Below are positions 987-22,206 of a stretch of DNA of 54,385 nt, one piece after another; positions within the stretch are counted from its first letter, which is position 1; each line of letters starts with the position of its first letter. The DNA is taken from the NCBI RefSeq assembly GCF_964194025.1, contig NW_027449238.1, positions 1 through 54,385 on the forward strand, given 5' to 3'. The translations under genes were made by a program, and so were the position numbers. The DNA is from Convolutriloba macropyga. Its lineage: Eukaryota. The notes under the pieces were generated by a model. It saw only the letters and a program-made list of their open reading frames with translations. It was not told the DNA's origin and made no database searches.

Positions 987-1000
987 TGTCGTGCAGGACG

Positions 1001-1360
1001 AGTACAGGTACTGTATGGGTACAGCATTGTGTTGTACTGATCTGTACTGGTACTCGTACTATTTTGCAGATGCGGTGCTTGTAGGGTACGATACTCGTAC
1101 GTACCATACAGTACGGTACCGATATGCATGTGTGCTGCGTTGTGAGTAGTTGTACGTGTGTACTCGTACCAGTAGGGTACGTTTACATGTCGCTAATCAC
1201 TCTGACTAAAGTACTGTAGGGCGAATACTGCAATCTCCGGAGATGGTGAGATTATTAGCAGTATTAGAGACCGTACGATCTACATCGGATGGTCAGGAGT
1301 GTCTGTCAGTGAAACTGCAAGTCAAGAGCCTGTAGGCTAAGTAGGATACTCAATATAAGC
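1001..1360 (+). promoter_or_regulatory. LTR U3 with 18 GTAC tetramers (1001-1276) and a TATA-like caatataag (~1351-1359); similar in the other LTR copies
   Basis: Hand count of GTAC; TATA-like box ~60 bp before the LTR end. Confidence 0.6.
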
Positions 1361-1420
1361 GAGTGCTGAAATTGTGTAAACCATCTTGATTTGTCACACA
1401 CACACTCACATACTTCAACA

Positions 1421-1432
1421 GGTTATGGGCCC
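1421..1432 (+). promoter_or_regulatory. Primer-binding site GGTTATGGGCCC, complementary to the anticodon stem-loop of initiator tRNA-Met (half-tRNA priming)
   Basis: Abuts the LTR end directly; same PBS type as Drosophila copia, Ty5 and Volvox Osser; also at 509, 10055, 21658 and (minus) 33279-33290. Confidence 0.88.
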
Positions 1433-1465
1433 TCTACTCTCTACTACGCTATACTTCTGACTACA

Positions 1466-1555
1466 GCGAGACTTCTTGGAGACTTCCTGACTTCGAGACT
1501 TCCTGACTTCGAGGCTTCGAGGCTTCGAGACTTCCTGACTTCCTTCCTTCGAGCC
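1466..1555 (+). repeat. Short tandem repeats in the copia 5' leader (gagacttcctgacttcgaggcttc-type units), variable between copies
   Basis: Unit number and order differ between ~556-650, 1466-1555 and ~21704-21790. Confidence 0.75.
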
Positions 1556-1963
1556 TTCTTCTTCAGACGTATCTTCCTGTGGAGAGCTTCGACTACGAGT
1601 GTGTGGAGCTGTCGACTTCGAGATCGAGATCGAGTGTTTTCTTGCAAGTGCTGCGAGTTGTGCAGCTGGGCAAGGAGTGGCGACGAGCACGAGACCTGCT
1701 GTCTGTGGTTACTCGTCTCCCTGTGTTTCTGGGCGGTGCTGTGTGTCGAGTGCCTGCCGATCTGTGCGCGAACCCTGCCTTGTCGGCCCTGTCGAGCGTG
1801 GAGACGTCTTTCCGAGTGGCGTTCCTGTTGCTGTTGTTCGGCCTGTTGGCAGTGGCGCTACTGTCCGTGACCGCGAGTACCTGCACGTGTTTCGGTGCCT
1901 GTCTGCTGCTCTTCGACCTATCGACCGATCTTGTTTCGTCTGCCTGATTCTCCTCGCGACATC

Positions 1964-4900: not shown

Positions 4901-6004
4901 AAGTCCATCTACGGGCTGAAGCAGGCTCCACGCAACTGGAACAAGACTGTGTCGGCGTGGTTGGTGGAGTATGGCTTCAAGCAGTCGACTGTGGACCCGT
5001 GCATCTACACCTTCGCTGCTGCTGGAGACCTCTACATCCTGGCTCTGTATGTGGACGACAGCATCATGGCGGGACCGCCAGGCAGCTTCATCTCCGACTT
5101 CAAGCGGGCGTTTGGCAAGCGCTTCAACGTGCAAGACCTGGGGCCGGTGTCTTGGCTACTGGGCATGACTGTGGAGCGTGACCGAGCAGCTGGAGTCCTC
5201 AAGGTGGGGCAGCGTCAGTACATCCTCGACATGCTGGAGCGCTTCAACATGTCGGACTGCAAGCCCGTCAGCACTCCCATGACCGTGGGTGCTCTGAGTG
5301 AGGCAACTGCCAGTGAAGTGCTGTCCCCAGATGTGCCGTATCAGAGTCTCATCGGGAGTCTGCTCTACGCATCTGTCAGCACCAGGCCAGACATCACCAT
5401 GGCCGTCAGCCATCTCAGCCGGTACATGGCCCGTCCTTCCACTGTACACTGGGAGCAAGCCGAGCGAGTGCTTCGGTACCTGCAGGGCACTCTGGACTGG
5501 CAGCTGGTGTATGGAGCCGGTGAGTCCACGGCGACCTTGACAGGCTACTCAGATGCTGACTTCGCTGGAGATGCAGACGGACGACGCTCTCGCACCGCCT
5601 TTGTGTTCCTGCTGAATGGCGCGGCGGTCAGCTGGAAAAGTCAGCGACAACCCACAGTGGCGCTCTCCACTGCCGAGGCGGAGTACATGGCTCTGACGGC
5701 TGCAACTCAAGAGGCTGTGTTTCTGAGGCAGCTGTTGCAGGAGATGGGGCAGCCTCCGGCATCTGGCACACTCATCCACGAGGACAACCAGAGCTGCATT
5801 GCCCTCTGCAAGAACACCATGACCACTGGCAGGAGCAAGCACATCGAGGTGAAGATGCACTTCTGTCGTGAGAAGCAGGAGAGCGGCGAGATCGTGGTTG
5901 ACTACTGCCCGACTGAGGAGATGTTGGCTGATGGTCTGAGCAAGCCGCTGGCTGGAGAGAGGCACAAGAAGCTGTTCAGGAGCGTGATGGGCTCGAGTGA
6001 GTAG
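1964..6004 (+). CDS. Copia Gag-Pol polyprotein, 1,346 aa from the first ATG (MAETVK...)
   Basis: Gag CCHC CWHCGESGHRRKDC; protease LVDSGAS; integrase WHLRLGH..CESC with D,D,E (VDFC, LDND, RVER); RT KARLVARGF, LKQAPR, YVDD; RNase H YSDADFA, AEAEY, EDNQ, LADGLSK; copia order PR-IN-RT-RH. Confidence 0.97.
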   Translation: MAETVKVPTFSGKAADFPVFRTKFTAYADALGLGGVLDCEDDVTTAQQKRLYSLLVLALPEAALHVIRKVERKSVTAGNDAWEALLHRYEHDGIHRRGDLLNALDEKQRPEETCMDFFNRLVDLQAQLGRVDEEVPDRRLVMNIIRGLRPEYAAMTDTINERDSAVTVEFMETLLATTGQRIERRLGEQREPKPAATAFPASGEEPEDLRSMMQKLKQEVAALTTSRRRNGGGSEFKGTCWHCGESGHRRKDCPKKSTPSANAADLEDSKAVAFPSVALSGTGSKVASLVQGEVETWMWLVDSGASHHMTSVREDFVEFRPIPQQWVKGISAYATGMGSVRLTMRAEDGEVVPAMLHDVYFVPDLAARAMSSHHRLFSVTQARQRGHRMVFEDPCDVLCVHERHGGGIRVPLRRDFGLVWLAAGMTTRSADVSACPAAAPPSKPLWHLRLGHLSESCMDRMRRAGATGLTFDASERLCFCESCAVCKSRVKAIPREPCADPERVFQQVGVDFCGPMTVPALGGGRYSFLVTDFKSRMLLHDVLRTKDEAPRSFRGVLDAVRKLGHRVEHVRLDNDSVLLGTDFMTVLQEHDITHDLIAPYSHWQHGRVERQWGTLVPMALAMLHTAGLEKCFWGLAMNAAVHMRNRSWSEAAGGPPLEIVTKCPVDLSRLRVFGCPAYVHIDKSRRRKLDDRAWRGIFVGYATDSPVWLVYNPRTRRVERSRNVDFDEMALMGSVSVGEKAPSAKDDDGVPVFFEEPVERSGGDTTSGEPTSPSSASGEPSQAVQESGEPSQPAVELRRSSRARQPPTEWWISQPAVNLAAAAGAVPHQEPASYKQALRSPQAEQWKAAMETEYDALTSRKTWRLVPRPAGRKLVDSKWVYKLKRNPDGSIARYKARLVARGFTQEHGVDYQETFAPTVKVAAIRIILALAAHFDWDVEQMDVVTAFLEADIAEDIYMRQPEGYRQVDQHGDELVCKVLKSIYGLKQAPRNWNKTVSAWLVEYGFKQSTVDPCIYTFAAAGDLYILALYVDDSIMAGPPGSFISDFKRAFGKRFNVQDLGPVSWLLGMTVERDRAAGVLKVGQRQYILDMLERFNMSDCKPVSTPMTVGALSEATASEVLSPDVPYQSLIGSLLYASVSTRPDITMAVSHLSRYMARPSTVHWEQAERVLRYLQGTLDWQLVYGAGESTATLTGYSDADFAGDADGRRSRTAFVFLLNGAAVSWKSQRQPTVALSTAEAEYMALTAATQEAVFLRQLLQEMGQPPASGTLIHEDNQSCIALCKNTMTTGRSKHIEVKMHFCREKQESGEIVVDYCPTEEMLADGLSKPLAGERHKKLFRSVMGSSE

Positions 6005-6448
6005 CGAGGGGGAGTGTCGTGCAGGACGAGTACAGGTACTGTATGGGTACAGCATTGTGTTGTACTGATCTGTACTGGTACTCGTACTATTTTGCAGATG
6101 CGGTGCTTGTAGGGTACGATACTCGTACGTACCATACAGTACGGTACCGATATGCATGTGTGCTGCGTTGTGAGTAGTTGTACGTGTGTACTCGTACCAG
6201 TAGGGTACGTTTACATGTCGCTAATCACTCTGACTAAAGTACTGTAGGGCGAATACTGCAATCTCCGGAGATGGTGAGATTATTAGCAGTATTAGAGACC
6301 GTACGATCTACATCGGATGGTCAGGAGTGTCTGTCAGTGAAACTGCAAGTCAAGAGCCTGTAGGCTAAGTAGGATACTCAATATAAGCGAGTGCTGAAAT
6401 TGTGTAAACCATCTTGATTTGTCACACACACACTCACATACTTCAACA

Positions 6449-6982
6449 CTCTCAAAGAGAGGTGGGGGGGTAGGGTAGGGTAGAACTCATTGCTCTCCCA
6501 ATTGTTAACGGAGGGATAGTCTCAAGCAAGGTGCTGACAGACAGAGCTGTCCCTAGCACTCTCCCCTAAAAGACCCAATCTTTTCTCCCAGCGCAACGCC
6601 GAGCCACACACAGACCAGCAGCACACGGAGGACCGAGTGGAGGTGGACGACAGGGCGAGACGAGCGGCGCAAAAGGCGGTACTAGGGCGTCGTCTTCGAG
6701 AACTCTCCCAGGAGCATCTCCTACACATCCTCAAGGTCAGAAGCATAAGAATACAAGAAATAGCACAGCCGGGACCTGGCCAGCCCGGCTCCGGACCCCC
6801 TCCCAGGCCCCCTTTAAAATAACCCCTCGGGGGGCTCCCTCCTGGCCGGGTTGCCACCCCCTACCCTAAGGTTTTAAAGGCTACTAGATACGGACCACCG
6901 GCAGTGGACGTGTTAGGACGTAATGACGTCTTCATGTACCCTACACTTGTAAGGACTTCTCTCTCTCTCTCTCGCTCTACTA
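6449..6982 (+). mobile_element. 3' end of non-LTR element A, related to element B: RLE C-terminus, 3' UTR and (CT)n-CTACTA tail
   Basis: LKERWG..GRVELIALP, KRPNL and LRELSQEHLLHILKVR align with LQRRWGRVKLIGIP, KRPNL and LRSLAQEHLLHVLRAR at 19081-19400; shared 3' UTR motifs. Confidence 0.82.
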
Positions 6983-7405
6983 ATATTATAGTATATATTA
7001 TAGACGACGGGATAGCCGACAAAAACAGTAGAATCAAGTATCGTTACGGGGCCGGACCGTTGTACGCGACTAGAACATACTGATAATATACTGTATCGTT
7101 ACGCTGTGGCTCATTAGTCCCGGGTGATTCTAACGGGTACCCCGCGGCTACACTGGAGTACGCTGCACGGAGCGTCGGGGGCACAGGCGTCGTTCCACCA
7201 ACATTTGGACGGCGCGGAATACGGAAGGACGTTTAGGGGGGACTAGGGGGGCATGTTCTGGTTGGACAGGAGGGCGGTTCGTATAGTGACTTACAGAGTT
7301 GAACGCATTGGAGGCCTTTACGTTAAATGCAGCCAAGGAGTTCGGTACGCATGCCTCCTGCGCGGCCTGAATGATCCACTGGATCATATCGGTACCAACC
7401 CAACT
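6983..7405 (+). repeat. Copy 1 of a ~420-bp direct duplication (TA-rich stretch, unique segment, CRE-like RT fragment); copy 2 at 19594-20025
   Basis: gacgacgggatagccgacaaaaacagtagaatc...ccaacccaact occurs at both sites with a few substitutions and indels. Confidence 0.93.
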
Positions 7406-8375
7406 GCCAGCCGACTTTGTCACACTGGTAGGGAATTTGTATGGGGCCACCACTGCTTACCTCACAAGGTGGGGAAAAACTGGGACCATCCCGGTGAATC
7501 GAGGCACCCTGCAGGGAGACCCCCTCTCCCCTCTGCTCTTTGAACTAATGATTGAACCTCTGGTAAGATGGCTGGCTCAGGGGGGCAGAGGCTGTGCGGG
7601 ATGCTCCTCCTTCCCAGAGCACCCTAGCCAGCAAATGGTACGCAGATGATGGCACCCTAGTGGCCAACAGCCCGAGCAGCCTCCGCCTCCAACTCCAAAA
7701 GGTGGATAGGTAACGGGGAGTGGTCTGGTATACGCTGTAATGTCTCGAAATGTAGGTTGACAGGCTACGTCCACCAGCTGCAATCCCTCCCCGCTGCTGA
7801 GGCTCTGCAAGCAATTGAAGGGATGCTGGCAGATGTCACCATTGACAGCAAACGAGTCCCGGTCATTGGGCAGAATGCCCCACTCCCAGGCACTTACCTG
7901 GGCACCTGCCTCACGGCCTCACTCAGATTTTAAGGCGCATTGGCAATGGGTCCAATCTACAATCACACCAGCCTGTGAGGCGGTGGTGGGGTCCCCCGTC
8001 CCTGTCCCGATTAAACAACATATGCTCGCCTGCACCAGTAAGGCTAAACTGGCACACACGCACACTATGATGGGCCTGACAGAGGACCAAATCAGCGCCC
8101 TGGATGCCAAGCTTGCTACGTATGTCAAACGAATACACTGCCTTCCCCCGACCATGGCCACAGCGGCCGTCCACTCCCCCCAGTCCGAGCTGGGCCTCGG
8201 CTTCCCCTCTGTGAGGGAAGACTATGCTTCGGCTGCCTCCCAGATGTGGCTCTTGCTCAACGAGGGGGGGGCGTTGGGGGAGGCAGCACGGCACTCCTTT
8301 GACCGCAGCTGGCCTCAGATTTCAACCCTGGCCCGCCTCCCTAGCTTTATCTTACTGCCCGTTCCTAATGGGTAG
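7404..8375 (+). pseudogene. Non-LTR reverse transcriptase (C-terminal palm motifs and thumb), frameshifted
   Basis: LPADFVTLVGNLYG, RGTLQGDPLSPLLFELMIEPL, WYADDG (7636-7653), thumb VHSPQSELGLGFPSV. Confidence 0.92.
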
Positions 8376-9065
8376 GGTGGTGGCAGTTCTTCAGAAATTC
8401 GGGATACACACTGAAGGCCCCCCCCCCCTGTGGCGAGGCAACTCCATAGCAACCAGCTCTCACTGTTCCCCCCAGTTAGACGCCGAGGGCTGCCAGCTCC
8501 CGGACCACCCCTACCCCCCGACAAACACAATTCTAGGCCGCCTCTCACCGCTCTGGGACAGTAATGTCCTGGAGTGGCATGAGCTCTTGTATTCCCTCCC
8601 GAGCGGGCGGATAAGGGTAGTTTCCTGGCAAGAGCTAACGTCCCGGAATCCCAACCTGGTGAAGAAGACGGCGGCCCCAAAGGGCGCTGGGCTATCTCCA
8701 GGACCTCCTAACTACCGAGTCCCTGCTTCACAAAGAGGGAAGCGAACTAGTAGGAGCCTCACCCCCAACGAATACTTGGTGAGCCCTCGCTGGAGAGCTA
8801 TGCTCCCACAGGCTAGTGAACTCCCACAGGAGCCGACCCCTACCCACATTCTAGAAGCCATGGGACTGCAGCCCATCACTACTTTCTGTGTCAAGGCCGG
8901 GCCAGGGGCCGACACACGGGCTACCCGTAGTGACAGCATGCCGTCGCCTGGGCGGTCATATCAGTCTAGTGCAGTGCATAAGCGAGTCAGAAAAAGAAAA
9001 GGCAGGTGCCGAAGCTCCCCCAGGGCTGGCCCCCCCATGCAGTGCCTGAACAGTGCCCCTGGCCG

Positions 9066-9620
9066 CAAGTGGCGCAGATCACCACCCACAGAGAGGGGTG
9101 CCCTGAACCCGTGTTAGAGCCTCCCCACGGCAACACAACTGAATACTTGGTTGAATGGACCCCCTCTTACTGCAGACATATACTACAGCTCCTAGAGCAG
9201 GTAAGTGATGTGTCCTCGGATGGGGAGGCGCCTGCCACCCTCCTGCACTTCATGGAGGGGCTGAGGAACCGGTCCCCTTTGAGTTGTGCCCTTTGCGGGA
9301 ATGGCGATCACACCTCGCCACAACAAGGACTGCGGCTCTGTGTCAGGTGCCTCTGCTTGTCCCACACAGATTGTGCCCAGGCTAGGGCTGAGGCGCTGGG
9401 TGTAGCCAAGCCCACAGGTCCCAATATCTCCCAGTGGAGCTGCCCGGGCTGCCCCGCCAAAGGGAGGCGATGTCCACTCCCAGGCTTTGTTTGTTTGGTC
9501 AGCTGGGAACCATTTTGGATGGTTGGGAATGTGATAACTTCGCTCCACAAAGGCATTAAGGCCCTAGAAACCTACAATGAGAGGTACCTGACAGCCCTCT
9601 GGATGAAAAGGAGGCGCCTC
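9066..9620 (+). pseudogene. Chromo-like segment plus PHD finger of element B
   Basis: VAQITTHR..EYLVEW; C4HC3 pattern CALC..CVRC....HTDC..WSCPGC at 9285-9452; followed by SWEP. Confidence 0.7.
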
Positions 9621-12600
9621 TGTCGTGCAGGACGAGTACAGGTACTGTATGGGTACAGCATTGTGTTGTACTGATCTGTACTGGTACTCGTACTATTTTG
9701 CAGATGCGGTGCTTGTAGGGTACGATACTCGTACGTACCATACAGTACGGTACCGATATGCATGTGTGCTGCGTTGTGAGTAGTTGTACGTGTGTACTCG
9801 TACCAGTAGGGTACGTTTACATGTCGCTAATCACTCTGACTAAAGTACTGTAGGGCGAATACTGCAATCTCCGGAGATGGTGAGATTATTAGCAGTATTA
9901 GAGACCGTACGATCTACATCGGATGGTCAGGAGTGTCTGTCAGTGAAACTGCAAGTCAAGAGCCTGTAGGCTAAGTAGGATACTCAATATAAGCGAGTGC
10001 TGAAATTGTGTAAACCATCTTGATTTGTCACACACACACTCACATACTTCAACAGGTTATGGGCCCTCTACTCTCTACTACGCTATACTTCTGACTACAG
10101 CGAGACTTCTTGGAGACTTCCTGACTTCGAGACTTCCTGACTTCGAGGCTTCGAGGCTTCGAGACTTCCTGACTTCCTTCCTTCGAGCCTTCTTCTTCAG
10201 ACGTATCTTCCTGTGGAGAGCTTCGACTACGAGTGTGTGGAGCTGTCGACTTCGAGATCGAGATCGAGTGTTTTCTTGCAAGTGCTGCGAGTTGTGCAGC
10301 TGGGCAAGGAGTGGCGACGAGCACGAGACCTGCTGTCTGTGGTTACTCGTCTCCCTGTGTTTCTGGGCGGTGCTGTGTGTCGAGTGCCTGCCGATCTGTG
10401 CGCGAACCCTGCCTTGTCGGCCCTGTCGAGCGTGGAGACGTCTTTCCGAGTGGCGTTCCTGTTGCTGTTGTTCGGCCTGTTGGCAGTGGCGCTACTGTCC
10501 GTGACCGCGAGTACCTGCACGTGTTTCGGTGCCTGTCTGCTGCTCTTCGACCTATCGACCGATCTTGTTTCGTCTGCCTGATTCTCCTCGCGACATCATG
10601 GCCGAGACCGTGAAGGTGCCGACGTTTTCGGGCAAGGCCGCCGACTTTCCTGTCTTCCGAACCAAGTTCACTGCTTACGCCGACGCTCTGGGGCTCGGAG
10701 GTGTGTTGGACTGCGAGGACGACGTCACCACGGCCCAGCAGAAGCGGCTCTACAGCCTGCTGGTCCTGGCCCTGCCTGAAGCTGCCCTCCATGTCATCCG
10801 CAAGGTCGAACGCAAGTCTGTCACTGCTGGCAACGATGCGTGGGAGGCCCTGCTGCACCGCTACGAGCATGACGGCATCCACCGGCGCGGTGACCTGCTG
10901 AACGCCCTGGATGAGAAGCAGCGCCCCGAGGAGACCTGCATGGACTTCTTCAACCGCCTCGTGGATCTTCAGGCACAGCTTGGGCGAGTCGATGAGGAGG
11001 TGCCAGATCGCCGCCTGGTGATGAACATCATCCGAGGTCTGCGCCCCGAATATGCCGCCATGACCGACACCATCAACGAGAGAGACTCTGCGGTGACAGT
11101 GGAGTTCATGGAGACCCTGCTGGCTACCACTGGACAGCGCATCGAGCGCCGCCTGGGTGAGCAACGCGAGCCTAAGCCTGCTGCTACAGCGTTTCCTGCG
11201 TCTGGTGAGGAGCCCGAGGATCTGCGGAGCATGATGCAGAAGCTGAAGCAGGAGGTGGCAGCTCTGACAACCTCCAGACGCCGCAACGGGGGAGGCAGTG
11301 AGTTCAAGGGCACCTGCTGGCACTGCGGCGAGTCTGGACACCGTCGCAAGGACTGCCCCAAGAAGAGCACTCCCAGCGCCAATGCTGCGGACCTGGAGGA
11401 CTCCAAGGCTGTGGCGTTTCCTTCAGTGGCTCTGTCTGGCACGGGCTCCAAGGTGGCTTCACTGGTGCAGGGCGAGGTGGAGACCTGGATGTGGCTGGTG
11501 GACAGTGGCGCCAGTCATCACATGACCAGCGTACGCGAGGACTTCGTCGAGTTCCGACCCATTCCACAGCAGTGGGTGAAGGGCATCAGCGCCTATGCTA
11601 CAGGCATGGGATCTGTCCGACTGACGATGCGAGCCGAAGATGGGGAGGTAGTTCCTGCTATGCTGCACGACGTCTACTTCGTGCCGGACCTGGCGGCGAG
11701 AGCAATGAGCAGTCACCACCGCCTCTTCAGCGTCACCCAGGCCAGGCAGCGCGGCCATCGGATGGTGTTCGAAGATCCGTGTGATGTGCTGTGTGTGCAT
11801 GAGAGACATGGAGGCGGCATTCGAGTGCCACTGCGGCGTGACTTCGGGCTGGTGTGGCTGGCTGCTGGCATGACCACCCGCAGTGCCGACGTCTCGGCCT
11901 GTCCTGCAGCAGCCCCGCCAAGCAAGCCCCTCTGGCACCTTCGGCTTGGTCATCTGAGTGAGTCTTGCATGGACCGGATGCGGCGCGCTGGAGCTACTGG
12001 CCTGACCTTCGATGCTTCGGAGCGGTTGTGCTTCTGCGAGTCATGTGCCGTCTGCAAGTCCCGAGTGAAGGCCATTCCGCGGGAGCCGTGCGCAGATCCG
12101 GAACGTGTCTTCCAGCAGGTTGGCGTGGACTTCTGCGGGCCGATGACTGTGCCAGCGCTAGGAGGCGGGCGGTACAGCTTCTTGGTGACGGACTTCAAGT
12201 CGCGCATGCTGCTGCATGATGTTCTGCGGACCAAGGACGAGGCGCCGAGATCCTTCCGAGGTGTTCTGGACGCTGTGCGCAAGCTTGGGCACAGAGTGGA
12301 GCATGTTCGCCTGGACAATGACAGCGTGCTGCTGGGGACCGACTTCATGACGGTGCTGCAAGAGCATGACATCACCCATGACCTCATCGCGCCGTACTCA
12401 CACTGGCAGCACGGCCGTGTTGAGCGGCAGTGGGGCACCTTGGTGCCGATGGCCCTGGCGATGCTGCACACTGCAGGCCTGGAGAAGTGCTTCTGGGGCC
12501 TGGCCATGAATGCCGCCGTCCACATGCGCAACCGATCGTGGAGCGAGGCCGCTGGAGGACCGCCGCTTGAAATCGTTACCAAGTGCCCAGTGGATCTCAG

Positions 12601-15082
12601 TCGTCTGCGTGTCTTCGGGTGCCCTGCATATGTCCACATCGACAAGTCTCGTCGGCGCAAGCTGGACGACCGCGCGTGGAGAGGCATCTTTGTGGGCTAT
12701 GCTACAGACTCGCCGGTGTGGCTGGTGTACAACCCGCGAACTCGGCGAGTGGAGCGCAGCCGCAACGTGGACTTCGATGAGATGGCGCTGATGGGATCCG
12801 TCAGCGTGGGGGAGAAAGCGCCGTCTGCTAAGGACGATGACGGAGTCCCAGTGTTCTTCGAGGAGCCTGTGGAGCGCTCTGGCGGCGACACCACTTCGGG
12901 GGAGCCAACTTCGCCTTCATCTGCCTCGGGGGAGCCGAGTCAGGCAGTACAGGAGTCGGGGGAGCCAAGTCAGCCTGCTGTTGAGCTCCGCCGCAGCTCG
13001 CGCGCCAGACAGCCGCCGACTGAGTGGTGGATCAGCCAGCCTGCTGTCAACCTTGCTGCTGCTGCCGGAGCCGTCCCTCATCAGGAGCCGGCCTCGTACA
13101 AGCAAGCGCTGCGGAGCCCGCAGGCTGAGCAGTGGAAGGCTGCCATGGAGACTGAGTACGACGCGCTGACGTCGCGCAAGACTTGGAGACTGGTACCCCG
13201 ACCTGCAGGACGCAAGCTGGTGGACTCCAAGTGGGTCTACAAGCTGAAGCGCAACCCTGACGGCAGTATCGCCAGGTACAAGGCTCGGCTTGTGGCCCGT
13301 GGCTTTACCCAGGAGCACGGCGTGGACTACCAGGAGACCTTCGCCCCCACGGTGAAGGTGGCGGCCATCCGAATCATACTGGCGTTGGCAGCGCACTTCG
13401 ACTGGGATGTGGAGCAGATGGACGTGGTGACAGCCTTCCTGGAGGCCGACATCGCCGAGGACATCTACATGAGGCAGCCTGAGGGATACCGCCAAGTGGA
13501 CCAGCATGGCGACGAGCTGGTGTGCAAGGTGTTGAAGTCCATCTACGGGCTGAAGCAGGCTCCACGCAACTGGAACAAGACTGTGTCGGCGTGGTTGGTG
13601 GAGTATGGCTTCAAGCAGTCGACTGTGGACCCGTGCATCTACACCTTCGCTGCTGCTGGAGACCTCTACATCCTGGCTCTGTATGTGGACGACAGCATCA
13701 TGGCGGGACCGCCAGGCAGCTTCATCTCCGACTTCAAGCGGGCGTTTGGCAAGCGCTTCAACGTGCAAGACCTGGGGCCGGTGTCTTGGCTACTGGGCAT
13801 GACTGTGGAGCGTGACCGAGCAGCTGGAGTCCTCAAGGTGGGGCAGCGTCAGTACATCCTCGACATGCTGGAGCGCTTCAACATGTCGGACTGCAAGCCC
13901 GTCAGCACTCCCATGACCGTGGGTGCTCTGAGTGAGGCAACTGCCAGTGAAGTGCTGTCCCCAGATGTGCCGTATCAGAGTCTCATCGGGAGTCTGCTCT
14001 ACGCATCTGTCAGCACCAGGCCAGACATCACCATGGCCGTCAGCCATCTCAGCCGGTACATGGCCCGTCCTTCCACTGTACACTGGGAGCAAGCCAAGCG
14101 AGTGCTTCGGTACCTGCAGGGCACTCTGGACTGGCAGCTGGTGTATGGAGCCGGTGAGTCCACGGCGACCTTGACAGGCTACTCAGATGCTGACTTCGCT
14201 GGAGATGCAGACGGACGACGCTCTCGCACCGCCTTTGTGTTCCTGCTGAATGGCGCGGCGGTCAGCTGGAAAAGTCAGCGACAACCCACAGTGGCGCTCT
14301 CCACTGCCGAGGCGGAGTACATGGCTCTGACGGCTGCAACTCAAGAGGCTGTGTTTCTGAGGCAGCTGTTGCAGGAGATGGGGCAGCCTCCGGCATCTGG
14401 CACACTCATCCACGAGGACAACCAGAGCTGCATTGCCCTCTGCAAGAACACCATGACCACTGGCAGGAGCAAGCACATCGAGGTGAAGATGCACTTCTGT
14501 CGTGAGAAGCAGGAGAGCGGCGAGATCGTGGTTGACTACTGCCCGACTGAGGAGATGTTGGCTGATGGTCTGAGCAAGCCGCTGGCTGGAGAGAGGCACA
14601 AGAAGCTGTTCAGGAGCGTGATGGGCTCGAGTGAGTAGCGAGGGGGAGTGTCGTGCAGGACGAGTACAGGTACTGTATGGGTACAGCATTGTGTTGTACT
14701 GATCTGTACTGGTACTCGTACTATTTTGCAGATGCGGTGCTTGTAGGGTACGATACTCGTACGTACCATACAGTACGGTACCGATATGCATGTGTGCTGC
14801 GTTGTGAGTAGTTGTACGTGTGTACTCGTACCAGTAGGGTACGTTTACATGTCGCTAATCACTCTGACTAAAGTACTGTAGGGCGAATACTGCAATCTCC
14901 GGAGATGGTGAGATTATTAGCAGTATTAGAGACCGTACGATCTACATCGGATGGTCAGGAGTGTCTGTCAGTGAAACTGCAAGTCAAGAGCCTGTAGGCT
15001 AAGTAGGATACTCAATATAAGCGAGTGCTGAAATTGTGTAAACCATCTTGATTTGTCACACACACACTCACATACTTCAACA
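9621..15082 (+). mobile_element. Full-length copia copy 2 (5,462 bp); LTRs 9621-10054 and 14649-15082; 5-bp TSD GCCTC
   Basis: gcctc at 9616-9620 and 15083-15087; LTRs appear identical; PBS and PPT present. Confidence 0.98.
10598..14638 (+). CDS. Copia Gag-Pol polyprotein, intact
   Basis: Same as copy 1 except EQAKR versus EQAER. Confidence 0.97.
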   Translation: MAETVKVPTFSGKAADFPVFRTKFTAYADALGLGGVLDCEDDVTTAQQKRLYSLLVLALPEAALHVIRKVERKSVTAGNDAWEALLHRYEHDGIHRRGDLLNALDEKQRPEETCMDFFNRLVDLQAQLGRVDEEVPDRRLVMNIIRGLRPEYAAMTDTINERDSAVTVEFMETLLATTGQRIERRLGEQREPKPAATAFPASGEEPEDLRSMMQKLKQEVAALTTSRRRNGGGSEFKGTCWHCGESGHRRKDCPKKSTPSANAADLEDSKAVAFPSVALSGTGSKVASLVQGEVETWMWLVDSGASHHMTSVREDFVEFRPIPQQWVKGISAYATGMGSVRLTMRAEDGEVVPAMLHDVYFVPDLAARAMSSHHRLFSVTQARQRGHRMVFEDPCDVLCVHERHGGGIRVPLRRDFGLVWLAAGMTTRSADVSACPAAAPPSKPLWHLRLGHLSESCMDRMRRAGATGLTFDASERLCFCESCAVCKSRVKAIPREPCADPERVFQQVGVDFCGPMTVPALGGGRYSFLVTDFKSRMLLHDVLRTKDEAPRSFRGVLDAVRKLGHRVEHVRLDNDSVLLGTDFMTVLQEHDITHDLIAPYSHWQHGRVERQWGTLVPMALAMLHTAGLEKCFWGLAMNAAVHMRNRSWSEAAGGPPLEIVTKCPVDLSRLRVFGCPAYVHIDKSRRRKLDDRAWRGIFVGYATDSPVWLVYNPRTRRVERSRNVDFDEMALMGSVSVGEKAPSAKDDDGVPVFFEEPVERSGGDTTSGEPTSPSSASGEPSQAVQESGEPSQPAVELRRSSRARQPPTEWWISQPAVNLAAAAGAVPHQEPASYKQALRSPQAEQWKAAMETEYDALTSRKTWRLVPRPAGRKLVDSKWVYKLKRNPDGSIARYKARLVARGFTQEHGVDYQETFAPTVKVAAIRIILALAAHFDWDVEQMDVVTAFLEADIAEDIYMRQPEGYRQVDQHGDELVCKVLKSIYGLKQAPRNWNKTVSAWLVEYGFKQSTVDPCIYTFAAAGDLYILALYVDDSIMAGPPGSFISDFKRAFGKRFNVQDLGPVSWLLGMTVERDRAAGVLKVGQRQYILDMLERFNMSDCKPVSTPMTVGALSEATASEVLSPDVPYQSLIGSLLYASVSTRPDITMAVSHLSRYMARPSTVHWEQAKRVLRYLQGTLDWQLVYGAGESTATLTGYSDADFAGDADGRRSRTAFVFLLNGAAVSWKSQRQPTVALSTAEAEYMALTAATQEAVFLRQLLQEMGQPPASGTLIHEDNQSCIALCKNTMTTGRSKHIEVKMHFCREKQESGEIVVDYCPTEEMLADGLSKPLAGERHKKLFRSVMGSSE

Positions 15083-15479
15083 GCCTCCCAGCCCAGGGAG
15101 GCGCCTCCCCGGTGGCGGAGCGGCTTGCCCCGTCTAGGCGTGCCCCCCCCCTTGCAGGGCCAGCACATCTCCTCCCGTACGATCATTGATGCGACTGAGT
15201 TGAATCCCTCCCTCGACATACACCCCACTGGGAAGTACGCTGCCAATTCAGTCCCTGCCCTCAACCCGGTGGAGCAAGGACGAGTCAGCATTCATGACCC
15301 AGACGGCAGGGCGGTGTCCCCCTACTGCCTTTCCCTAGACAGATACCAATGGCTGTGGGCTCAGCATAGGCGACATGCCCCCCCACAGGCCGACTTCCAC
15401 CAGGACCTGGCCAGACTCTTGCGCAGATACCATCCCAGGGCAAAGACAGTGAACCCTCAGGGAGCATGCCTGGACCTGA

Positions 15480-15960
15480 AGAACCATTGGTCGTTGCAGC
15501 TCTCTCTCACCGAGGATAACCACCGCACGTTTAGCACAGAGTGCGAACTGTTCAGCAGCCCCCTGAACTGTAGCATGGGCAGGGACCTGGCATGCTGCTC
15601 CCCGTTCCAGGAAGATGCTAGGTTCGGGGCTGTGGTGAACTCGTTTGGGTATCGGTGGACTGGTTCATGTGTGGCCAACCAGGAGTATACTGCCGCGGAT
15701 ATGCGGCAGGCTATGGAGCACGCGATCCGCTCGTCAGTCTCGACGGAGAACCCTTTCCTCTGCCTGCTTGTCCTCCCGGCCTGGGATGATTCGCCATGGC
15801 GCAGCGCCGGGCTTCTCTCCCACAGGCCTGTGCGCCGCCTTTTACAAATCCCCCACGGCAGGTTCCGGTTTATACCAGCTCATATGCACAGGGGTAGACC
15901 CGGCTGCCCTCACGCCAGCTGAGTGTGCGGTAGACGTAATGCTAGTGGCCAACGACCGGG
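15480..15960 (+). pseudogene. PCIF1/CAPAM-like N6-adenine methyltransferase domain of element B
   Basis: ECELFSSPLNC..CSPFQEDARFGA..GSCVANQEY..MRQAMEH..PFLCLLVLPAW parallels PCIF1 ECFASPLNC..CSAF..FGS..GSFEANPPF..MVSH..PLSFIVFIPEW (recalled, not aligned by software). Confidence 0.82.
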
Positions 15961-16236
15961 GGATGTCTGAATACATTGACATGACCGCGCTGGAACACAC
16001 CCTGGTTCCTGCCCTACGGCATAGCTGTGCCTTTAAAGACCTACATGTTGAACTATTCCCCCCGATGCAAAATCAGGGGGAAGGTATACAGCCAAGAACC
16101 ACACGCCCAGCCCCCCTTACCGTCCCGCATGGGTCTCCACCCCCCATGCAAGGGCTTGGATGACCCCCTCTGGCCAAGAGACCCCACTCTGGAGGCATCA
16201 GCAGAGGATATACGCCCCCTCCCCCAAGATAAACCC

Positions 16237-17175
16237 TTGGTGGTGGTGGAACTGTGCGCTGGCATTGCCACGGGGCTGGAAGCCCTTCTCAGAGGGGGAC
16301 ATTACATATCGTCGTATACATGGGCGGACATCAACCCAGATGCTCACCAAGCCACTGGACACAGGCTCGCTAAACTGCAGAGGCGGTTCCCGGCACAGCT
16401 CCCCCCTACTGCGGTGGAGGGATGGGACAGGCGCATACCTTTCAACGTCAACTGCATTACCCCGGAACTGCTGAGCCCCTCTTTCCCGGACGGCATCGAC
16501 CTGGTAATAGCGGGGCCCCCCTGCCAGCCGTACTCTACCGCTGGGATACAAAAGGGGCTCGGTGACCCGAGAAGTGGAGCGCTCATAAATATGGCTCGGC
16601 TTATAAGCTATTTGCACTCCACGCAGAGGAATGGGGTTAGATATATCATTGAGAAGGTTCCGGGCACTGAGAGGCACCCAGAGGTGGCAAGAATGTTGGA
16701 CGCCCCGGTCAAGCTGGATGCCCCGCCGTGTGGGTCGGCTGCACGCCGGAAGACACTATTCTGGCAGAATCTTGCCCCTGTAGGCGAGATCCTCTCTCAA
16801 TTCAAAGCTCTCCCGCCCTTCACTGCTACAGTAAATGAGGTCCTCTCCAGGGCGGGTCTCAACAACTGGCGCTCACAGCCGCAGACCCTAGGAGTGACTT
16901 GCTTCCCCGGGGACCCATACAATGTCCCGGGGCAGCCCCAGTGAGCCATCCCCAAAATGGTGTGCTTCGAGGGCTCCCACGCTTTTCCTTTCAAAAAGAT
17001 AAGAGGGAGGACGCTGCCAGGGCCTGGCATGTTATACAAGGGCAGCGATCTCACTGAGCCCGATGCGGACGTGGCTGAGGCTCTGATGGGTTTCGTGTTA
17101 GGGGACACAGCTGCCACGGGGCTGTTGCCGGCCCAGCGCCGCCACCTCTTCGGACAGTGTATTGACATAAACCTG
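16237..17175 (+). pseudogene. C5-cytosine DNA methyltransferase domain (DNMT3-like motif style), split by one in-frame stop at 16942
   Basis: Motif I ELCAGIATG; II ADIN; IV AGPPCQPYS; VI IIEKV (ENV variant); VIII RRKTLFWQNL; IX EALMGF..DT; X RRHLFGQ. Confidence 0.9.
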
Positions 17176-17484
17176 TTTTCCTGGCTTATCGCCACTGCCT
17201 CCCCCCGCACGACCCCGATTCCCCCCGTCCTCCCGCTCGCAGCGAGACACACGGTGCCGAAGGAGCAGGCAGGCTGCTGCAGATCGCTGCGGCCCAAGAG
17301 GCGGGCCGTTGGGGAGGGGCCCCTCTGCCGTGGGACTGTATGCACCCCCTGGATGCCCCATCCTGTCCACACTCGCCATCGAAAGATGATAATGGCCCCG
17401 CCCTACCCTGGGGCCGAGGTGATCGCTCTGTTGTGCCTGCCCCCTCCCCCCCGTGCCGCCCTCTTGCCCATAATGCCTCTGCTT

Positions 17485-17885
17485 GGGTATACACAGATGG
17501 TTCCAGGAGCGAGTCGTCTTCGACACTGGGAGCGGCGGTGGTACACATGCCATCTGACACATACATAAGAGTGGCCTGCACGGGGGAGGCAGAATGTAAC
17601 ACGGGTTTCAGAGCTGAACTAGTGGGCATACATTCCTCTCTGTGTGCGTTTGAAAAGGCTGAGCACCTGTACGTCCTAAGTGACTGTGCGTCTGCCATTC
17701 AGGCGATGGAAGCCTCCCTCCTCCGCCCCCATGAGAAAGGGTACCATCATCACAGGCCCCTCCTACAAGCCATCTGCTACGGCATCGCAGACACGGACAG
17801 GAGGGGCTGGCATACGGTCATCAGAAAGGTCAGGGCTCACGTTGGAATTGAAGGGAATGACCTGGCGGACTGGCATGCTAAGTTT
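17485..17885 (+). pseudogene. Ribonuclease H domain of element B
   Basis: WVYTDGS, NTGFRAELVGI, LSDCASAI, KVRAHVGIEGNDLAD (D-E-D-D plus H). Confidence 0.93.
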
Positions 17886-18483
17886 GCGGCCAAAAACCCA
17901 TTGGGAACGGAGGAATACCACGTAAAGGTGCACACCCTGGGGGCAGTGCCGACCAGACCTAGCTACTGGCTCTTCTATGACCCCGCCAAACCTGCTGCAC
18001 ATGATCCTGGGGCTGAGGTTCTCGCAGCGCTGGCGGGGCATCCGTCCCAAAAGCGTAAATCTCCGGATGTAGGTGAGGCAGCGGACACTACCGTCCAGAA
18101 GAGGCCTTCCCCCACCCCGGCAACGGATGCCCGGCCTTCGGCCTCGCAGAAAAGGCAACTGGGAGCCGTCCATCAGCCTCCCCCTCCCGACGTAGAGCCT
18201 GAGCCTGCCCGGTATGCATTCACTGACCCGCAGAGACAGATTAGAGCTAAGGTCAGGCCCCAAGTGCTGGAGCTTACTGCTGCAACGTCCCTCTATAGAC
18301 GGTTGATAGTGGATGCCAAGCAGAGAGGGGATAGGATAGACGAGACAGCTGCAGGTGAGCTGCGACAGACAGGAAGGCAGGCACAAAGACGCCACCCGGA
18401 TCTTCAAATTTCTGTGGGGAAACCCTAAAGTACTATAATGGCAAGCTGGCTAAGAGGTATGGGCATTCGGCCAATGATAGGCG

Positions 18484-19460
18484 TGCCCTCTGCGCTTTGC
18501 CTGAGTCGTGCACTCGAATAGGGGCGGGCTGCCCTGCCCTGGCACCCCATTACCTCCTTCGCCATCAGGCCGCTGTCCAGGCGGTGCATCTGTTTATCCG
18601 AAAGAGTGAGAAGGGTGCAGGAGCCCTGTTTGGAAACCCGTGGACCCTGGTCTCATGCGACGGGGGGAGTGAGTCGACTGGGACAAGAGATATTACACTG
18701 CAGAGAATAGTGCCGGACGCTGCCGCAGCTACGCCGCCTGCAGGACCCCACAGACGCTGTGACCCTAGCCTGTGCATACAGGACTGTCTGCCGTCTCTCA
18801 GATCCTATGCTCCGCTGGCTGAATGTGCCTCCGCCCCCAGGTACCTGAATGAGTGGGTCTTGCCCCTGGGGGAGAAGCAACGCCTGATCTCTGAAGGAGC
18901 GGGGCTGGCCCCCGACATTGTGTACGCCAGGGGTGTACCCAACTTGACTCCCCCTCCCCTGCACTCCTATACCCCGCGCCAGTGCAGCCTGCTGCTGGTT
19001 GAGGTGGGATTCCGTCAAGATCTGCGGTTGCAAACGAAGGAACAGCTTAAACTGGGCAAATATGAGGCTTTGGTTCAAGCCCTACAGCGACGCTGGGGCA
19101 GGGTGAAGCTCATAGGGATCCCATAGGGATAGGAGGCACAGTGTCAGGGGAGACAGCCCAGGAGCTGCCACTGGCTTTGTGTACAAAGCGACCTAACCTA
19201 ACAGGGGCACCGGGGCCTCCCGGTGGCAGTACCACTGCAGCATCTAAGAGATCGGAACAGGGGGCGGTGAAGACGGAGTGGGCGCCAGGGCTCTGAGGGC
19301 TACGAGGAAGGGAATGCGAGGCCTGACCAAGGAGCTAAGGAGCCTGGCGCAAGAGCACCTATTACACGTCCTGCGAGCACGAGTATGTAAGCTGCTGAGC
19401 GCCGGAGACTCGGCCGGGGGAGGCACCGGGGCCCCCGCTTTAAGACCAAAAAGTAAATAA
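18484..19460 (+). pseudogene. Zinc knuckle, restriction-like PD-(D/E)xK endonuclease and C-terminus of element B
   Basis: Degenerate CxxC..(H to R)....C, RHQAAV, APDIVY, LLVEVGF..D, K..KYEAL; ORF ends ~19460. Confidence 0.8.
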
Positions 19461-19593
19461 CCGTTCGGGGAGCAGTCCCGTAGCCTGGCTGCTCCCCCGT
19501 ACGTTCTTTTAAGGCTACTAGGTACTACCCTGGTACTTAGGGCTGGGTGCTGATGTCTACATGTTCCCTGCCTAAATGCTCCTCCTCCTACTA

Positions 19594-20025
19594 TATATTA
19601 TATATAGACGACGGGATAGCCGACAAAAACAGTAGAATCAAATATCGTTACGGGGCCGGTCCGTTGTACGCGACTAGAACATACTGATAATATACTGTAT
19701 CGTTACGCTGTGGCTCATTAGTCCCGGGTGGCTCATTACTGATTCTAACGGGTACCCCGCGGCGAAACTGGAGTACGCTGCACGGAGCGTCGGGGGCACA
19801 GGCGTCGTTCCACCAACATTATGGACGGCGCGGAATACGGAAGATCATTTAGGGGGACTAGTGGGGCATGTTCTGGTTGGACAGGAGGGCGGTTCGTATA
19901 GTGTCCCGACTTACAGAGCTGAACGCATTGGAGGCCTTTACGTTAAATGCAGCCAAGGAGTTCGGTACGCATGCCTCCTGCGCGGCCTGAATGATCCACT
20001 GGATCATATCTGTGCCAACCCAACT
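19594..20025 (+). repeat. Copy 2 of the ~420-bp direct duplication flanking element B
   Basis: Matches 6983-7405. Confidence 0.93.
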
Positions 20026-21221
20026 ACGAACCGCAAATTTATGCGGACCGAACGCGTCGGCTAGTAAATCTTGTAGTAGGCAGATCGAGGCAAGGCGGAC
20101 CAGTACCATACCATACCCGATGGGACGTAGCGGTAGCCTTAGGCGGGGTCAGACTGCATGTCCACCGTGTCGGGGTCCTTCTTCAGGGGGAATTAGGGAT
20201 GTAAGCACCTAAAGGAGTTTATCACATTAGATTTTACAGGAATTGGAGGATTCGAGTGCTAAATTTATCTGTCCAGGTCGGGCACCGGCCAAGGCCGCAG
20301 CACAGCGATCATCCGCGACCAGACAGGCCAGATACTCTTACCAACTGTCCCGATAAGCAGCAGAGCGGCGGGGCTACGCCTCAATACTCTGCGAAGGGTT
20401 TCAACTACACTCTCCGGGGCAGGACGGGACTCAAAAGGCCGGGTCAGGGCTTGTCTGACGGCGAAAAAAGTAGGTGAAGGGAATCCAAGGAGTCAGTCAG
20501 GTCGCTGCAGGGGTCGGAGGGTCTGAGGCGGACGGGGCAGCGGCATCCCGAAAGAGAGAGCCTTCAGTTCTTTCTGTGTCGTCAACCCCGCAGCTCTCTG
20601 CTGCTCTGACATTCTTCCAAAGCTGCTGCGGTCTCTCCAACCTCTTCATATTGCTCGTGGACGCCCCCTCGTTACTTTTGACGGTGAGAGACCACCCTGC
20701 ACAGACGAAACCCGCACTTCTCGGCCGCTTTGACGTGAGACCGCTCCGCTGGTGCTTCCGACAAGCGCCCCTGACTGTTTCCTCTCTGACGACACTTTCC
20801 GACACGATCACGACCTCGAAAAGATCGACACGCCTCGGATCTGGTAGCTCTGGCCCCCAGCTGCTCAACACGACCGAGATTCTCAATTTTGGCCGACGGA
20901 CGGCGGAGTTCTAGCTCGTGTCCGCGGCGTAGTGGCGGTGGCGGCGCTGAGTTTAGCCTGACGACATTTCCGCCGGTCACCGCGGCCGGACGGCGCTCCG
21001 AACCTTCGCCAAATGTGCTGGAACGCATCGGAACTGGTAGCCCTGAGCTGTCCGACACGACATAGATTCTTCGTTATGGTCACCGGACGGCGGAGTTCTG
21101 ACCTGATTCCTCGGCGGTGGCGGCGGTGGCGCCGTGTTCCCCTTGCGACTACCCGCAAAGCTCTGCGGCCCGAGTGCAGCTGGAACCCATCTGGAAGCCC
21201 AGAGCGTCAGCTTCCTGACAC
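19750..21221 (-). pseudogene. Degenerate CRE/SLACS-like non-LTR RT relic; its 5' part is low-complexity and is cut by copia copy 3
   Basis: Minus strand LIP(fs)LKKD..LRPIGYGMVLVRLA..KFAV...GTDMIQW..SNAFSSVSRDTI fits CRE-clade RT motifs 1-3; extent beyond ~20300 is uncertain. Confidence 0.65.
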
Positions 21222-22206
21222 TGTCGTGCAGGACGAGTACAGGTACTGTATGGGTACTGCATTGTGTTGTACTGATCTGTACTGGTACTCGTACTAAATT
21301 GCAGATGCGGTGCTTGTAGGGTACGATACTCGTACGTACCATACAGTACGGTACCGATATGCATGTGTGCTGCGTTGGGAGTAGTTGTGTGTAGTTGTAC
21401 TCGTACCAGTAGGGTACGTTTACATGTCGCTAATCACTCTGACTAAAGTACTGTAGGGTGAATACTGCAATCTCCGGAGATGGTGAGATTATTAGCAGTA
21501 TTAGAGACCGTACGATCTACATCGGATGGTCAGGAGTGTCTGTCAGTGAAACTGCAAGTCAAGAGCCTGTAGGCTAAGTAGGATACTCAATATAAGCGGG
21601 TGCTGAAATTGTGTAAACCATCTTGATTTGTCACACACACACTCACATACTTCAGCAGGTTATGGGCCCTCTACTCTCCACTACGCTATACTTCTGACTA
21701 CAGCGAGACTTCTTGGAGACTTCCTGACTTCGAGGCTTCGAGACTTCCTGACTTCGAGGCTTCGAGACTTCCTGACTTCCTTCCTTCGAGCCTTCTTCTT
21801 CAGACGTATCTTACTGTGGAGAGCTTCGACTACGAGTGTGTGGAGCTGTCGACTTCGTGATCGAGATCGAGATCGAGTGTTTTCTTGCAAGTGCTGCGAG
21901 TTGTGCAGCTGGGCAAGGAGTGGCGACGAGCACGAGACCTGCTGTCTGTGGTTACTCGTCTGCCTGTGTTTCTGGGCGGTGCTGCGTGTCGAGTGCCTGC
22001 CGATCTGTGCGTGAACCCTGCCTTGTCGGCCCTGTCGAGCGTGGAGACGTCTTTCCGAGTGGCGTTCCTGTTGCTGTTGTTCGGCCTGTTGGCAGTGGCG
22101 CTACTGTCCGTGACCGCGAGTATATGCACGTGTTTCGGTGCCTATCTGCTGCTCTCCGACCTGTCGACCGATCTTGTTTCGTCAGCCTGATTCTCCTCGC
22201 GACATC

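Follow-up and report, generated by a model that had tools for sequence, protein, structure and literature searches.

What are two methyltransferases (MTases) of different kinds doing inside one retrotransposon? The question arises in a 54,385-nt stretch of the genome of the animal Convolutriloba macropyga (NCBI RefSeq assembly GCF_964194025.1, contig NW_027449238.1, positions 1 to 54,385; hereafter the window). There a long interspersed nuclear element (LINE), which we call copy B, reads on the plus strand through a reverse transcriptase (RT), a PHD-like region, a PCIF1/CAPAM-like MTase, a C5-cytosine MTase, an RNase H and a restriction-like endonuclease (RLE). A sequence-only reading of the window had proposed that both MTases are parts of the element's polyprotein, not cargo beside it, and that the element marks its own RNA, cDNA or insertion site. 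Copy B itself is dead, as that reading had also said: compared with an intact open reading frame (ORF) of the family, it is broken by about 12 frame changes and one in-frame stop (a TGA; Table 1), and it is 5'-truncated inside the RT. The first proposal is answered by its relatives.

Intact relatives encode both methyltransferases in one polyprotein

Protein searches of the 1.18-Gb assembly for both MTase segments found them adjacent within very long open frames on other contigs of the same genome. Contig C1707 carries an ORF of 3815 amino acids, 77-80% identical to copy B and preceded by an overlapping 938-residue frame; C4007 carries a single frame of 5061 residues; C4596 has 3626 residues plus a 1383-residue upstream frame; and the ORFs of C333 and C2229 have 2665 and 2487 residues. 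A 5'-truncated copy on C4029 is 98% identical to C1707, whose subfamily has one full-length copy only. The Pfam matches in the intact ORFs follow the order Exo_endo_phos, RVT_1, PHD, PCIF1_WW, DNA_methylase, RNase_H, with RVT_1, PCIF1_WW, DNA_methylase and RNase_H above cut-off. The full order in these relatives (2487-5061 residues) is a Ulp1/C48-like peptidase, an apurinic/apyrimidinic-type endonuclease (APE), RT, PHD, PCIF1/CAPAM-like MTase, DNMT3-like C5-MTase, RNase H, a CCHC zinc knuckle and an R2-type RLE, and the live copies keep the RT YADD, RNase H DGS and RLE PD motifs.

On C1707, C4007, C4596, C333 and C2229, and in metagenomic ORFs described below, both MTases thus lie inside one uninterrupted ORF. 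Neither segment has target-site duplications (TSDs) or introns of its own, and in every member the DNMT domain passes straight, unbroken, into the YTDGS motif of RNase H. With the same order in intact ORFs and no marks of separate insertion, the MTases belong to the polyprotein, as proposed. Judged from these sequences, copy B belongs to the giant non-LTR retrotransposons of the Dualen type and to a family with few copies, housed in an animal genome. The intact copies specify a single polyprotein of ~3800-5100 residues, sometimes as two overlapping frames, and both MTases are integral to it, vertically inherited and under purifying selection.

The selection is seen in two comparisons. Between C1707 and C4029, dN/dS is 0.19 at a dS of 0.04. 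Between C1707 and copy B synonymous sites are saturated, and the proportions pN/pS are given instead: 0.17/0.71 for the PCIF1-like domain, 0.13/0.67 for the DNMT and 0.13-0.18/0.60-0.69 for the RT. Because the MTase values are similar to those of the RT, both MTases are at least as constrained as the RT.

The upstream frame overlaps the main ORF by 116 nt in C1707 (15719-15834) and by 475 nt in C4596 (14681-15155), with the two joined in one frame in C4007; the overlaps could reflect programmed frameshifting or recent mutation. The N-terminal 900-2100 residues of the ORFs are variable and carry no domain annotation, and neither the 938-residue ORF1 of C1707 nor residues 1-1500 of C4007 had a Pfam match even at E 5. 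Searches of sequencing runs yielded DNA assemblies only, with contigs as long as 87 kb; compared with C1707, they show that the element is present, with single-nucleotide polymorphisms between samples, and do not speak to its transcription. In four such assemblies of the same species the contig graph forks within the conserved 3' untranslated region (UTR) of the element (L044, on C1707, 4253-4328) into an alternative AAT/ATT-rich path, which might belong to a different element with the same 3' end or to a truncated, very short copy.

The backbone is that of a Dualen/RandI LINE

Dualen/RandI LINEs, the subject, reportedly, of Kojima and Fujiwara in 2005, combine a cysteine peptidase, APE, RT, RNase H, CCHC motif and RLE in one giant ORF, and dual endonucleases are their defining trait. 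The sequence-only reading had named this backbone, and the intact copies, with an APE upstream of the RT and a C-terminal RLE, agree with it. The APE matches Pfam Exo_endo_phos at E 1.2e-3 in C1707 and E 7e-3 in C4007, and at cut-off in the related sequence P0014; a profile built from six sequences matches the L1 endonuclease (E 1e-6), and the catalytic E, D and DH line up in that match. It is missing from copy B because of the 5' truncation. For the RLE, a profile of eight C-termini matches R2 proteins only in the whole PDB (E 3.6e-4 and 6.5e-4), over a span that takes in both the CCHC/RHN block and the E..K..KY block, and the pattern PD-(x~25)-E-x-G...K..KY is conserved throughout the members. 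RNase_H is above cut-off in copy B and in all intact copies, always between RT and RLE.

Upstream of the APE lies a peptidase module, single in C4007 and C4596 and duplicated in ORF2 of C1707 (residues 61-340 and 373-650, mutual E 6e-20; L045:3885-5654). The best match of its profile, at E 0.009, is to a Ulp1-like SUMO protease, whose H, D, Q and C find counterparts in the module; this gives modest support for the cysteine peptidase that Dualen elements carry at this place. The RT is about equally similar in the PDB to that of R2 (E 3e-24) and to L1 ORF2p (E 3e-20). Dual endonucleases, RNase H and peptidase together support, at the level of domain architecture, assignment of the element to the Dualen/RandI type.

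An accessory MTase has a precedent in this group, since the giant cryptophyte element Dualen-1_GCr carries a SET domain (Lescot et al. 2016, PMC5029228). Published descriptions of Dualen/RandI elements, however, are without a PCIF1-like, DNMT or PHD domain, and their hosts are green algae or cryptophytes, whereas the host here is an animal, as its genome also indicates by the presence of Wnt genes (172 bits) and the absence of light-harvesting-complex (LHC) genes.

A CAPAM-type fold with an NPEY tetrad

The claim of an N6-adenine MTase of the PCIF1 kind holds for the domain and the fold, as seen by Pfam, phmmer and structure comparison; the catalytic NPPF is replaced by NPEY in the family and by NQEY in copy B, so that the adenine-N6 chemistry is only putative. 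In a phmmer search of the PDB, human PCIF1 (6irv) is matched at E 7e-7 with NPEY aligned onto NPPF. An AlphaFold2 (AF2) model of the domain, made from a 25-sequence alignment, has a pLDDT of 90.4, and its six best Foldseek matches in the PDB are human and zebrafish CAPAM (E 3e-12 to 6e-11, TM 0.57-0.62), the next match being at 1e-3. The modelled fold is solidly of the PCIF1/CAPAM type. Likeness to the PCIF1/CAPAM structures (PDB 6irv-6is0) lies in this fold (TM 0.62 query-normalised for the best match), in PF12237 above its curated cut-off, and in shared SPLNC, D..FG and N-P-x-aromatic blocks; in contrast, the LINE domain has NPEY for NPPF, comes with no Pfam match to a WW domain in the intact ORFs and sits within a LINE polyprotein. 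The model aligns over ~270 of the ~490 residues of the CAPAM core.

All 12 intact relatives that bear a DNMT have NPEY, not NPPF, as their tetrad, and so do 47 of the 62 related sequences. Over 25 PCIF1-like domains that are 26-50% identical to C1707, NPEY, SPLN and D..FGA are invariant. Degenerate tetrads also occur in a few relatives that retain the domain (VPPM in P0011, HPGQ in P0118).

A literature search on PCIF1/CAPAM with transposons found no report of such a domain in any transposon. The closest published remark is that the Pfam family PCIF1_WW is in fact a CAPAM-like MTase and that choanoflagellates and haptophytes have it in fusion proteins (PMC7641849). DIRS elements with Dam-like adenine MTases are likewise retroelements that bear an adenine-MTase-type domain, but of an unrelated MTase family and in a tyrosine-recombinase element with a different replication mode. 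The ESM Atlas clusters nearest to the PCIF1-like domain in language-model features are PCIF1_WW proteins of ~385-433 residues labelled Chlorophyta and Nucleocytoviricota; CAPAM-like enzymes may circulate in giant viruses too.

A DNMT3-like enzyme and a PHD region

The DNMT domain has DNMT3A and DNMT3B as its best PDB matches and keeps, in every intact member, motifs I (FxGxG-like), IV (PPCQPYS), VI (ENVPG), VIII (RxR; R..FW.N) and IX/X, and the C-terminal LLGQCID.N block. No ADD or PWWP match was found; a PHD finger lies upstream of the DNMT, with the PCIF1-like domain between them.

The "chromo-like/PHD" region of the sequence-only reading fared unevenly. The PHD part stands on a C4HC3 pattern and on Pfam matches that are weak but recurrent, reaching cut-off in P0014 only. 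The AF2 model of the region is of moderate quality (pLDDT 72), and in Foldseek PHD fingers come first, followed by a few chromodomain matches of ~30 residues, all at E > 0.7. These few matches and two Y/V-x-V-x-W motifs suggest a chromo-like reader weakly at most, and we do not regard it as established.

Among retrotransposons, C5 DNMTs under purifying selection are also found in SymbioLINE-Dnmt, SymbioDIRS-Dnmt3 and KnitGypsy-Dnmt3 (PMC5890265), and DNMTs borne by transposable elements (TEs) are on record from dinoflagellate LINEs (in ORF1), DIRS elements and charophyte gypsy or copia elements (PMC5890265, PMC12344493). The idea of cDNA self-methylation originates with de Mendoza et al. 2018 (PMC5890265). 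The SymbioLINE DNMT, however, is of an orphan type and lies in ORF1 upstream of the RT ORF, whereas the DNMT3-like domain here lies downstream of the RT in the same ORF, between the PCIF1-like domain and RNase H, and none of the elements of that study has an adenine-MTase fold or a PHD. No reported TE-borne DNMT sits in a LINE RT polyprotein or accompanies a PCIF1-like domain.

This DNMT domain also has homologues in polyproteins of LTR retrotransposons, gypsy-type (P0009, P0010) and copia-type (P0012, from Tetraselmis striata in EukProt), and in many other long ORFs of the same genome (C1925, C3484, C3042, C4446, C3925, C3642 and others), which suggests that DNMT modules have been exchanged among TE classes.

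Distribution and order of acquisition

Relatives extend beyond this genome. A word-indexed protein search found eight metagenomic proteins with the PCIF1_WW/DNA_methylase core in the same order, on contigs of three unrelated assemblies; they also carry RVT_1, RNase_H or PHD, depending on the portion of the ORF that the fragment covers. When HMMER was run exhaustively against 1.84 billion representatives, 2050 matches came up, 76 of them below 1e-30, and the PCIF1-DNMT junction is spanned by at least 12 clusters at 50% identity. The relatives from these two large searches are metagenome proteins without names.

LINEs of this kind that lack the DNMT abound in metagenomes: many giant ORFs (2100-3800 residues) read (OTU or Josephin peptidase)-APE-RT-PCIF1_WW-RNase H, with OTU or Josephin where the Ulp1/C48-like peptidase sits; most keep NPEY, and at least one of them, P0011, aligns through the RLE as well. 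In an RT tree of 32 elements, the 11 that bear a DNMT form one branch (support 100/99) beside the PCIF1-only elements. The PHD was found in the DNMT clade only, in most but not all members. On the tree and the domain content, the PCIF1-like domain reads as an old module of a large Dualen-like LINE group, not special to this element, and the DNMT as gained once, later, in one subclade.

CpG content and host methyltransferases

The CpG observed/expected ratio is 0.43-0.59 in every LINE copy, intact ones included, against 0.81 in the adjacent copia elements, 0.8-1.2 in the flanks and 0.70 in the rest of the window; the GpC ratio is ~0.84-0.99 in LINE copies and up to 1.2 in other segments. The low CpG is consistent with germline CpG methylation of the LINE copies and does not indicate the writer. 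It parallels the SymbioLINE-Dnmt elements, DNMT-bearing LINEs that are CpG-poor too (PMC5890265). The host genome holds one multi-exon C5-DNMT locus (G000:C1:3302631-3328224) and one single-exon, full-length DNMT2-like ORF (C15:23969286-23970380). A genome search for DNMT1-RFD, in which the control was silent too, gave no match.

The copy in the window

Copy B is the window sequence 7404-19589 minus a nested copia element; a second, older LINE fragment on its left is copy A, whose upstream part is cut off by copia copy 1. We excised the nested copia (copia copy 2) in silico, so that 7404-9620 runs directly into the sequence from 15089 on, and compared the pieces free of stops with Pfam. The 5-bp TSD that had been reported for this copia, GCCTC, is present at both flanks. 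With the copia removed, tblastn with the intact 3815-residue ORF aligns window 7404-19442 collinearly with residues 1633-3813, in keeping with the single plus-strand domain run that had been described. The profile searches recovered RVT_1, PCIF1_WW, DNA_methylase and RNase_H, and PHD weakly (Table 1). The knuckle and RLE are likewise real, as their motifs and the match of the family profile to R2 proteins attest. The 3' end needs correction: the element had been taken to end at 19593, and its tail, a short (CCT)n, ends 4 bp earlier.

Catalytic positions have decayed in copy B. The PCIF1-like tetrad has changed as noted above, DNMT motif VI reads EKV for ENV, and the zinc knuckle has lost one Cys and the His.

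Table 1. Copy B, its neighbours and its flanks, in window coordinates
Feature	Position	Strand	Evidence
Copy A: 3' fragment (ORF end, 3' UTR, (CT)n tail) of a LINE from this family, older and diverged	6445-6978	+	tblastn C1707 residues 3693-3796, 40% identity; 3' UTR alignment with copy B, C1707, C4029
Left direct repeat (~435 bp) bracketing copy B, read as long TSD	6979-7413	.	aligned to 19590-20033
5'-truncated RT, from RT motif 3-4 onward; QGDPLS, YADD at 7639	7404-8354	+	Pfam RVT_1 at 7371-7646, truncated, E 7e-5; tblastn C1707 residues 1633-1954
Post-RT thumb/linker, frameshifted	8269-9048	+	tblastn C1707 residues 1921-2189, 48% identity
PHD finger (C4HC3, 9285-9452) with a conserved, possibly chromo-like Y/V-x-V-x-W motif on either side (at 9141 and at 9492)	9141-9518	+	weak Pfam PHD/PHD_4 (PHD at 8982-9620, E 0.01-0.05); Cys/His pattern; Foldseek PHD fingers first, E > 0.7
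Nested young copia copy 2, intact 1369-residue ORF, identical LTRs; not LINE sequence	9621-15083	+	TSD GCCTC at 9616-9620 and 15084-15088
PCIF1/CAPAM-like MTase; SPLNC 15557; tetrad decayed to NQEY within 15674-15691	15089-15919	+	PF12237 (PCIF1_WW) at 15089-15919, E 2.4e-11, above curated cut-off; 75% identity to C1707; motifs
DNMT3-like C5-MTase; motif I 16249, PCQ 16513, EKV 16645, RR..FW.N 16738, GQCID.N 17149; TGA 16942-16944	16078-17265	+	PF00145 (DNA_methylase) at 15985-16941, E 4.6e-9, above curated cut-off; motif alignment
RNase H; YTDGS 17490	17223-18377	+	PF00075 (RNase_H) at 17166-18425, E 8e-10, above curated cut-off; tblastn C1707
Decayed CCHC (18488-18532) and R2-type RLE (RHQ 18560, PD 18908, E 18989, K..KY 19049)	18428-19129	+	motifs; family profile against PDB
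ORF C-terminal tail (stop 19458-19460), ~130-nt 3' UTR with conserved stem-forming block, (CCT)3 tail to 19589	19120-19589	+	tblastn C1707; 3' UTR alignment
Right direct repeat (long TSD); unique flank beyond 20033	19590-20033	.	alignment to 6979-7413

The window holds three copia copies (987-6449, 9621-15083 and 21222 onward) and an older partial copia at 77-1020. Copies 1 and 2 have the same intact ORF, the compared long terminal repeat (LTR) segments are identical within and between copies, and in copy 2 the segments compared were two of 300 nt. Because of these identical segments and the shared intact ORF, the copia family looks very recently active.

A direct repeat flanks copy B

Copy B is bracketed by a direct repeat of ~435/444 bp, on which the sequence-only reading was silent. 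In the alignment of its two units, 437 columns long, there are 11 mismatches and 7 gap openings. Copy A (40% amino-acid identity over 6445-6753) ends to the left of the left unit, at the same junction as copy B. The repeat is essentially single-locus in the genome, and the flanks of C1707 and C4029 are unrelated. Rfam gave no match, either across the whole window at gathering thresholds or over 19400-21250 at relaxed E. In active Dualen-4b_cRei of Chlamydomonas, more than half of the insertions have flanking duplications longer than 50 bp, with a median of 900 bp, ascribed to the two endonucleases (Lopez-Cortegano et al. 2023, PMC9977147). Because long duplications of this kind are documented for an active Dualen, and because the repeat does not behave as an LTR, an RNA gene or a dispersed repeat, it reads, by analogy, as a ~435-bp TSD of copy B. 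An RNA-gene target was rejected on the empty Rfam result and the near uniqueness of the repeat. LTRs were rejected too, on account of the 5' truncation of the copy inside the RT, its LINE tail and the place of copy A ahead of the left unit.

Discussion

We favor the view, with a probability of about 0.8, that copy B belongs to giant Dualen-type LINEs with two integral MTases, which would mark the element's own nucleic acids. Such marking, of RNA, cDNA or the insertion site, is what we infer from the domain content. The element's cycle might then run as follows. The polyprotein, possibly cleaved by its own peptidase, would bind the element RNA, and integration would proceed by target-primed reverse transcription with two nucleases, the RT copying the RNA and RNase H clearing it. 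Widely staggered nicks would give the ~435-bp duplication at copy B, where the first-strand nick and priming would have coincided precisely with copy A's 3' junction, which hints that tail homology assisted the priming or that local sequence was preferred. While the cDNA is being made or afterwards, the DNMT3-like domain, tethered to the nascent cDNA, would methylate CpGs in the new copy. In DNMT3 it is the ADD domain that acts as a gate, and the PHD finger here, reading the H3 tail, would possibly gate the DNMT3-like domain. The CAPAM-fold domain would act on adenine of the element's capped RNA or of the RNA/cDNA intermediate. The element would thus write its own epigenetic or epitranscriptomic marks.

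Several observations weigh against this interpretation or loosen parts of it. N6-MTases have the motif consensus (D/N)PP(Y/F/W), from which NPEY deviates, and catalysis at adenine N6 can therefore not be taken for granted. Given how much of the CAPAM core the model leaves unaligned, the domain may lack cap recognition. The support for the PHD is weak and that for a chromo-like domain weaker. Self-BLAST of C1707, C4007, C4596, C2229 and C333 found no long TSD around these other full-length copies, and either host methylation or composition could account for the low CpG.

It could also be that the MTase-like domains are integral but that one or both are non-catalytic, serving as RNA- or DNA-binding or scaffold modules of the LINE ribonucleoprotein; the PCIF1-like fold, for example, might hold the capped 5' end or an adenine-rich template segment without methylating it. 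That the N6-MTase motif has its second proline replaced in most of the relatives by far (47/62) would fit such a role, as would the retention of the domain in relatives with degenerate tetrads and the reported failure of a SymbioLINE DNMT to methylate DNA in yeast (de Mendoza 2018, PMC5890265). We nevertheless think it doubtful, because NPEY, SPLN and D..FGA are strictly invariant at such low identity, as an active site would be, because the DNMT keeps PCQ, ENV and all other catalytic motifs, and because selection on both domains is as strong as on the RT. A very different possibility, that the MTases are host-gene passengers of this copy alone or were juxtaposed by chance through nested insertions, draws on the setting, a TE nest with three copias and a second LINE fragment. 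It can hardly be right: the ORFs that run through the same order without a break on five further contigs and in metagenomes assembled independently, the at least 12 clusters that span the PCIF1-DNMT junction, the lack of internal TSDs and the purifying selection on both domains all speak against it, and the other copies found refute it.

The flanking repeats raise an alternative of their own, in which they are terminal repeats of an LTR- or DIRS-like element, or tandem units of a specific target, and not a long TSD. That the related copies A and B stop at exactly the same junction with the repeat, as in site-specific RLE LINEs, would be explained by a specific target. Such an origin is improbable, however, because copy B has the truncation and tail of a LINE and no integrase or tyrosine recombinase, because the repeat is essentially confined to one locus and matches no RNA family, because the C1707 and C4029 flanks are unrelated, and because long flanking duplications are the documented signature of active Dualen (PMC9977147).

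If self-marking by the giant Dualen-type LINE is the right interpretation, a more specific version can be put forward tentatively. The CAPAM-fold NPEY MTase might be an ancestral, obligatory module of a major Dualen-like LINE group, modifying adenine in the element's own capped RNA or RNA/cDNA. One subclade, alive in an animal germline, might have added a PHD-gated DNMT3-like enzyme that writes 5-methylcytosine on new insertions, giving a two-layer self-marking of RNA and DNA. We regard this as speculative.

TE DNMTs are on record from a few elements of protists and algae. In the family described here, one LINE polyprotein has both an MTase fold of the cap-adenosine type and a complete DNMT3-like enzyme built into it, and selection maintains them. 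Intact, near-identical copies in an animal genome would make a tractable system for the self-marking of RNA and DNA by a retroelement, and for asking whether such marking serves to evade host silencing or to recruit it. More widely, a previously unrecognised CAPAM-like module with a new NPEY active-site variant is widespread in giant LINEs of environmental eukaryotes, which broadens the range over which PCIF1-family enzymes are known and adds to the architecture annotated for Dualen elements.

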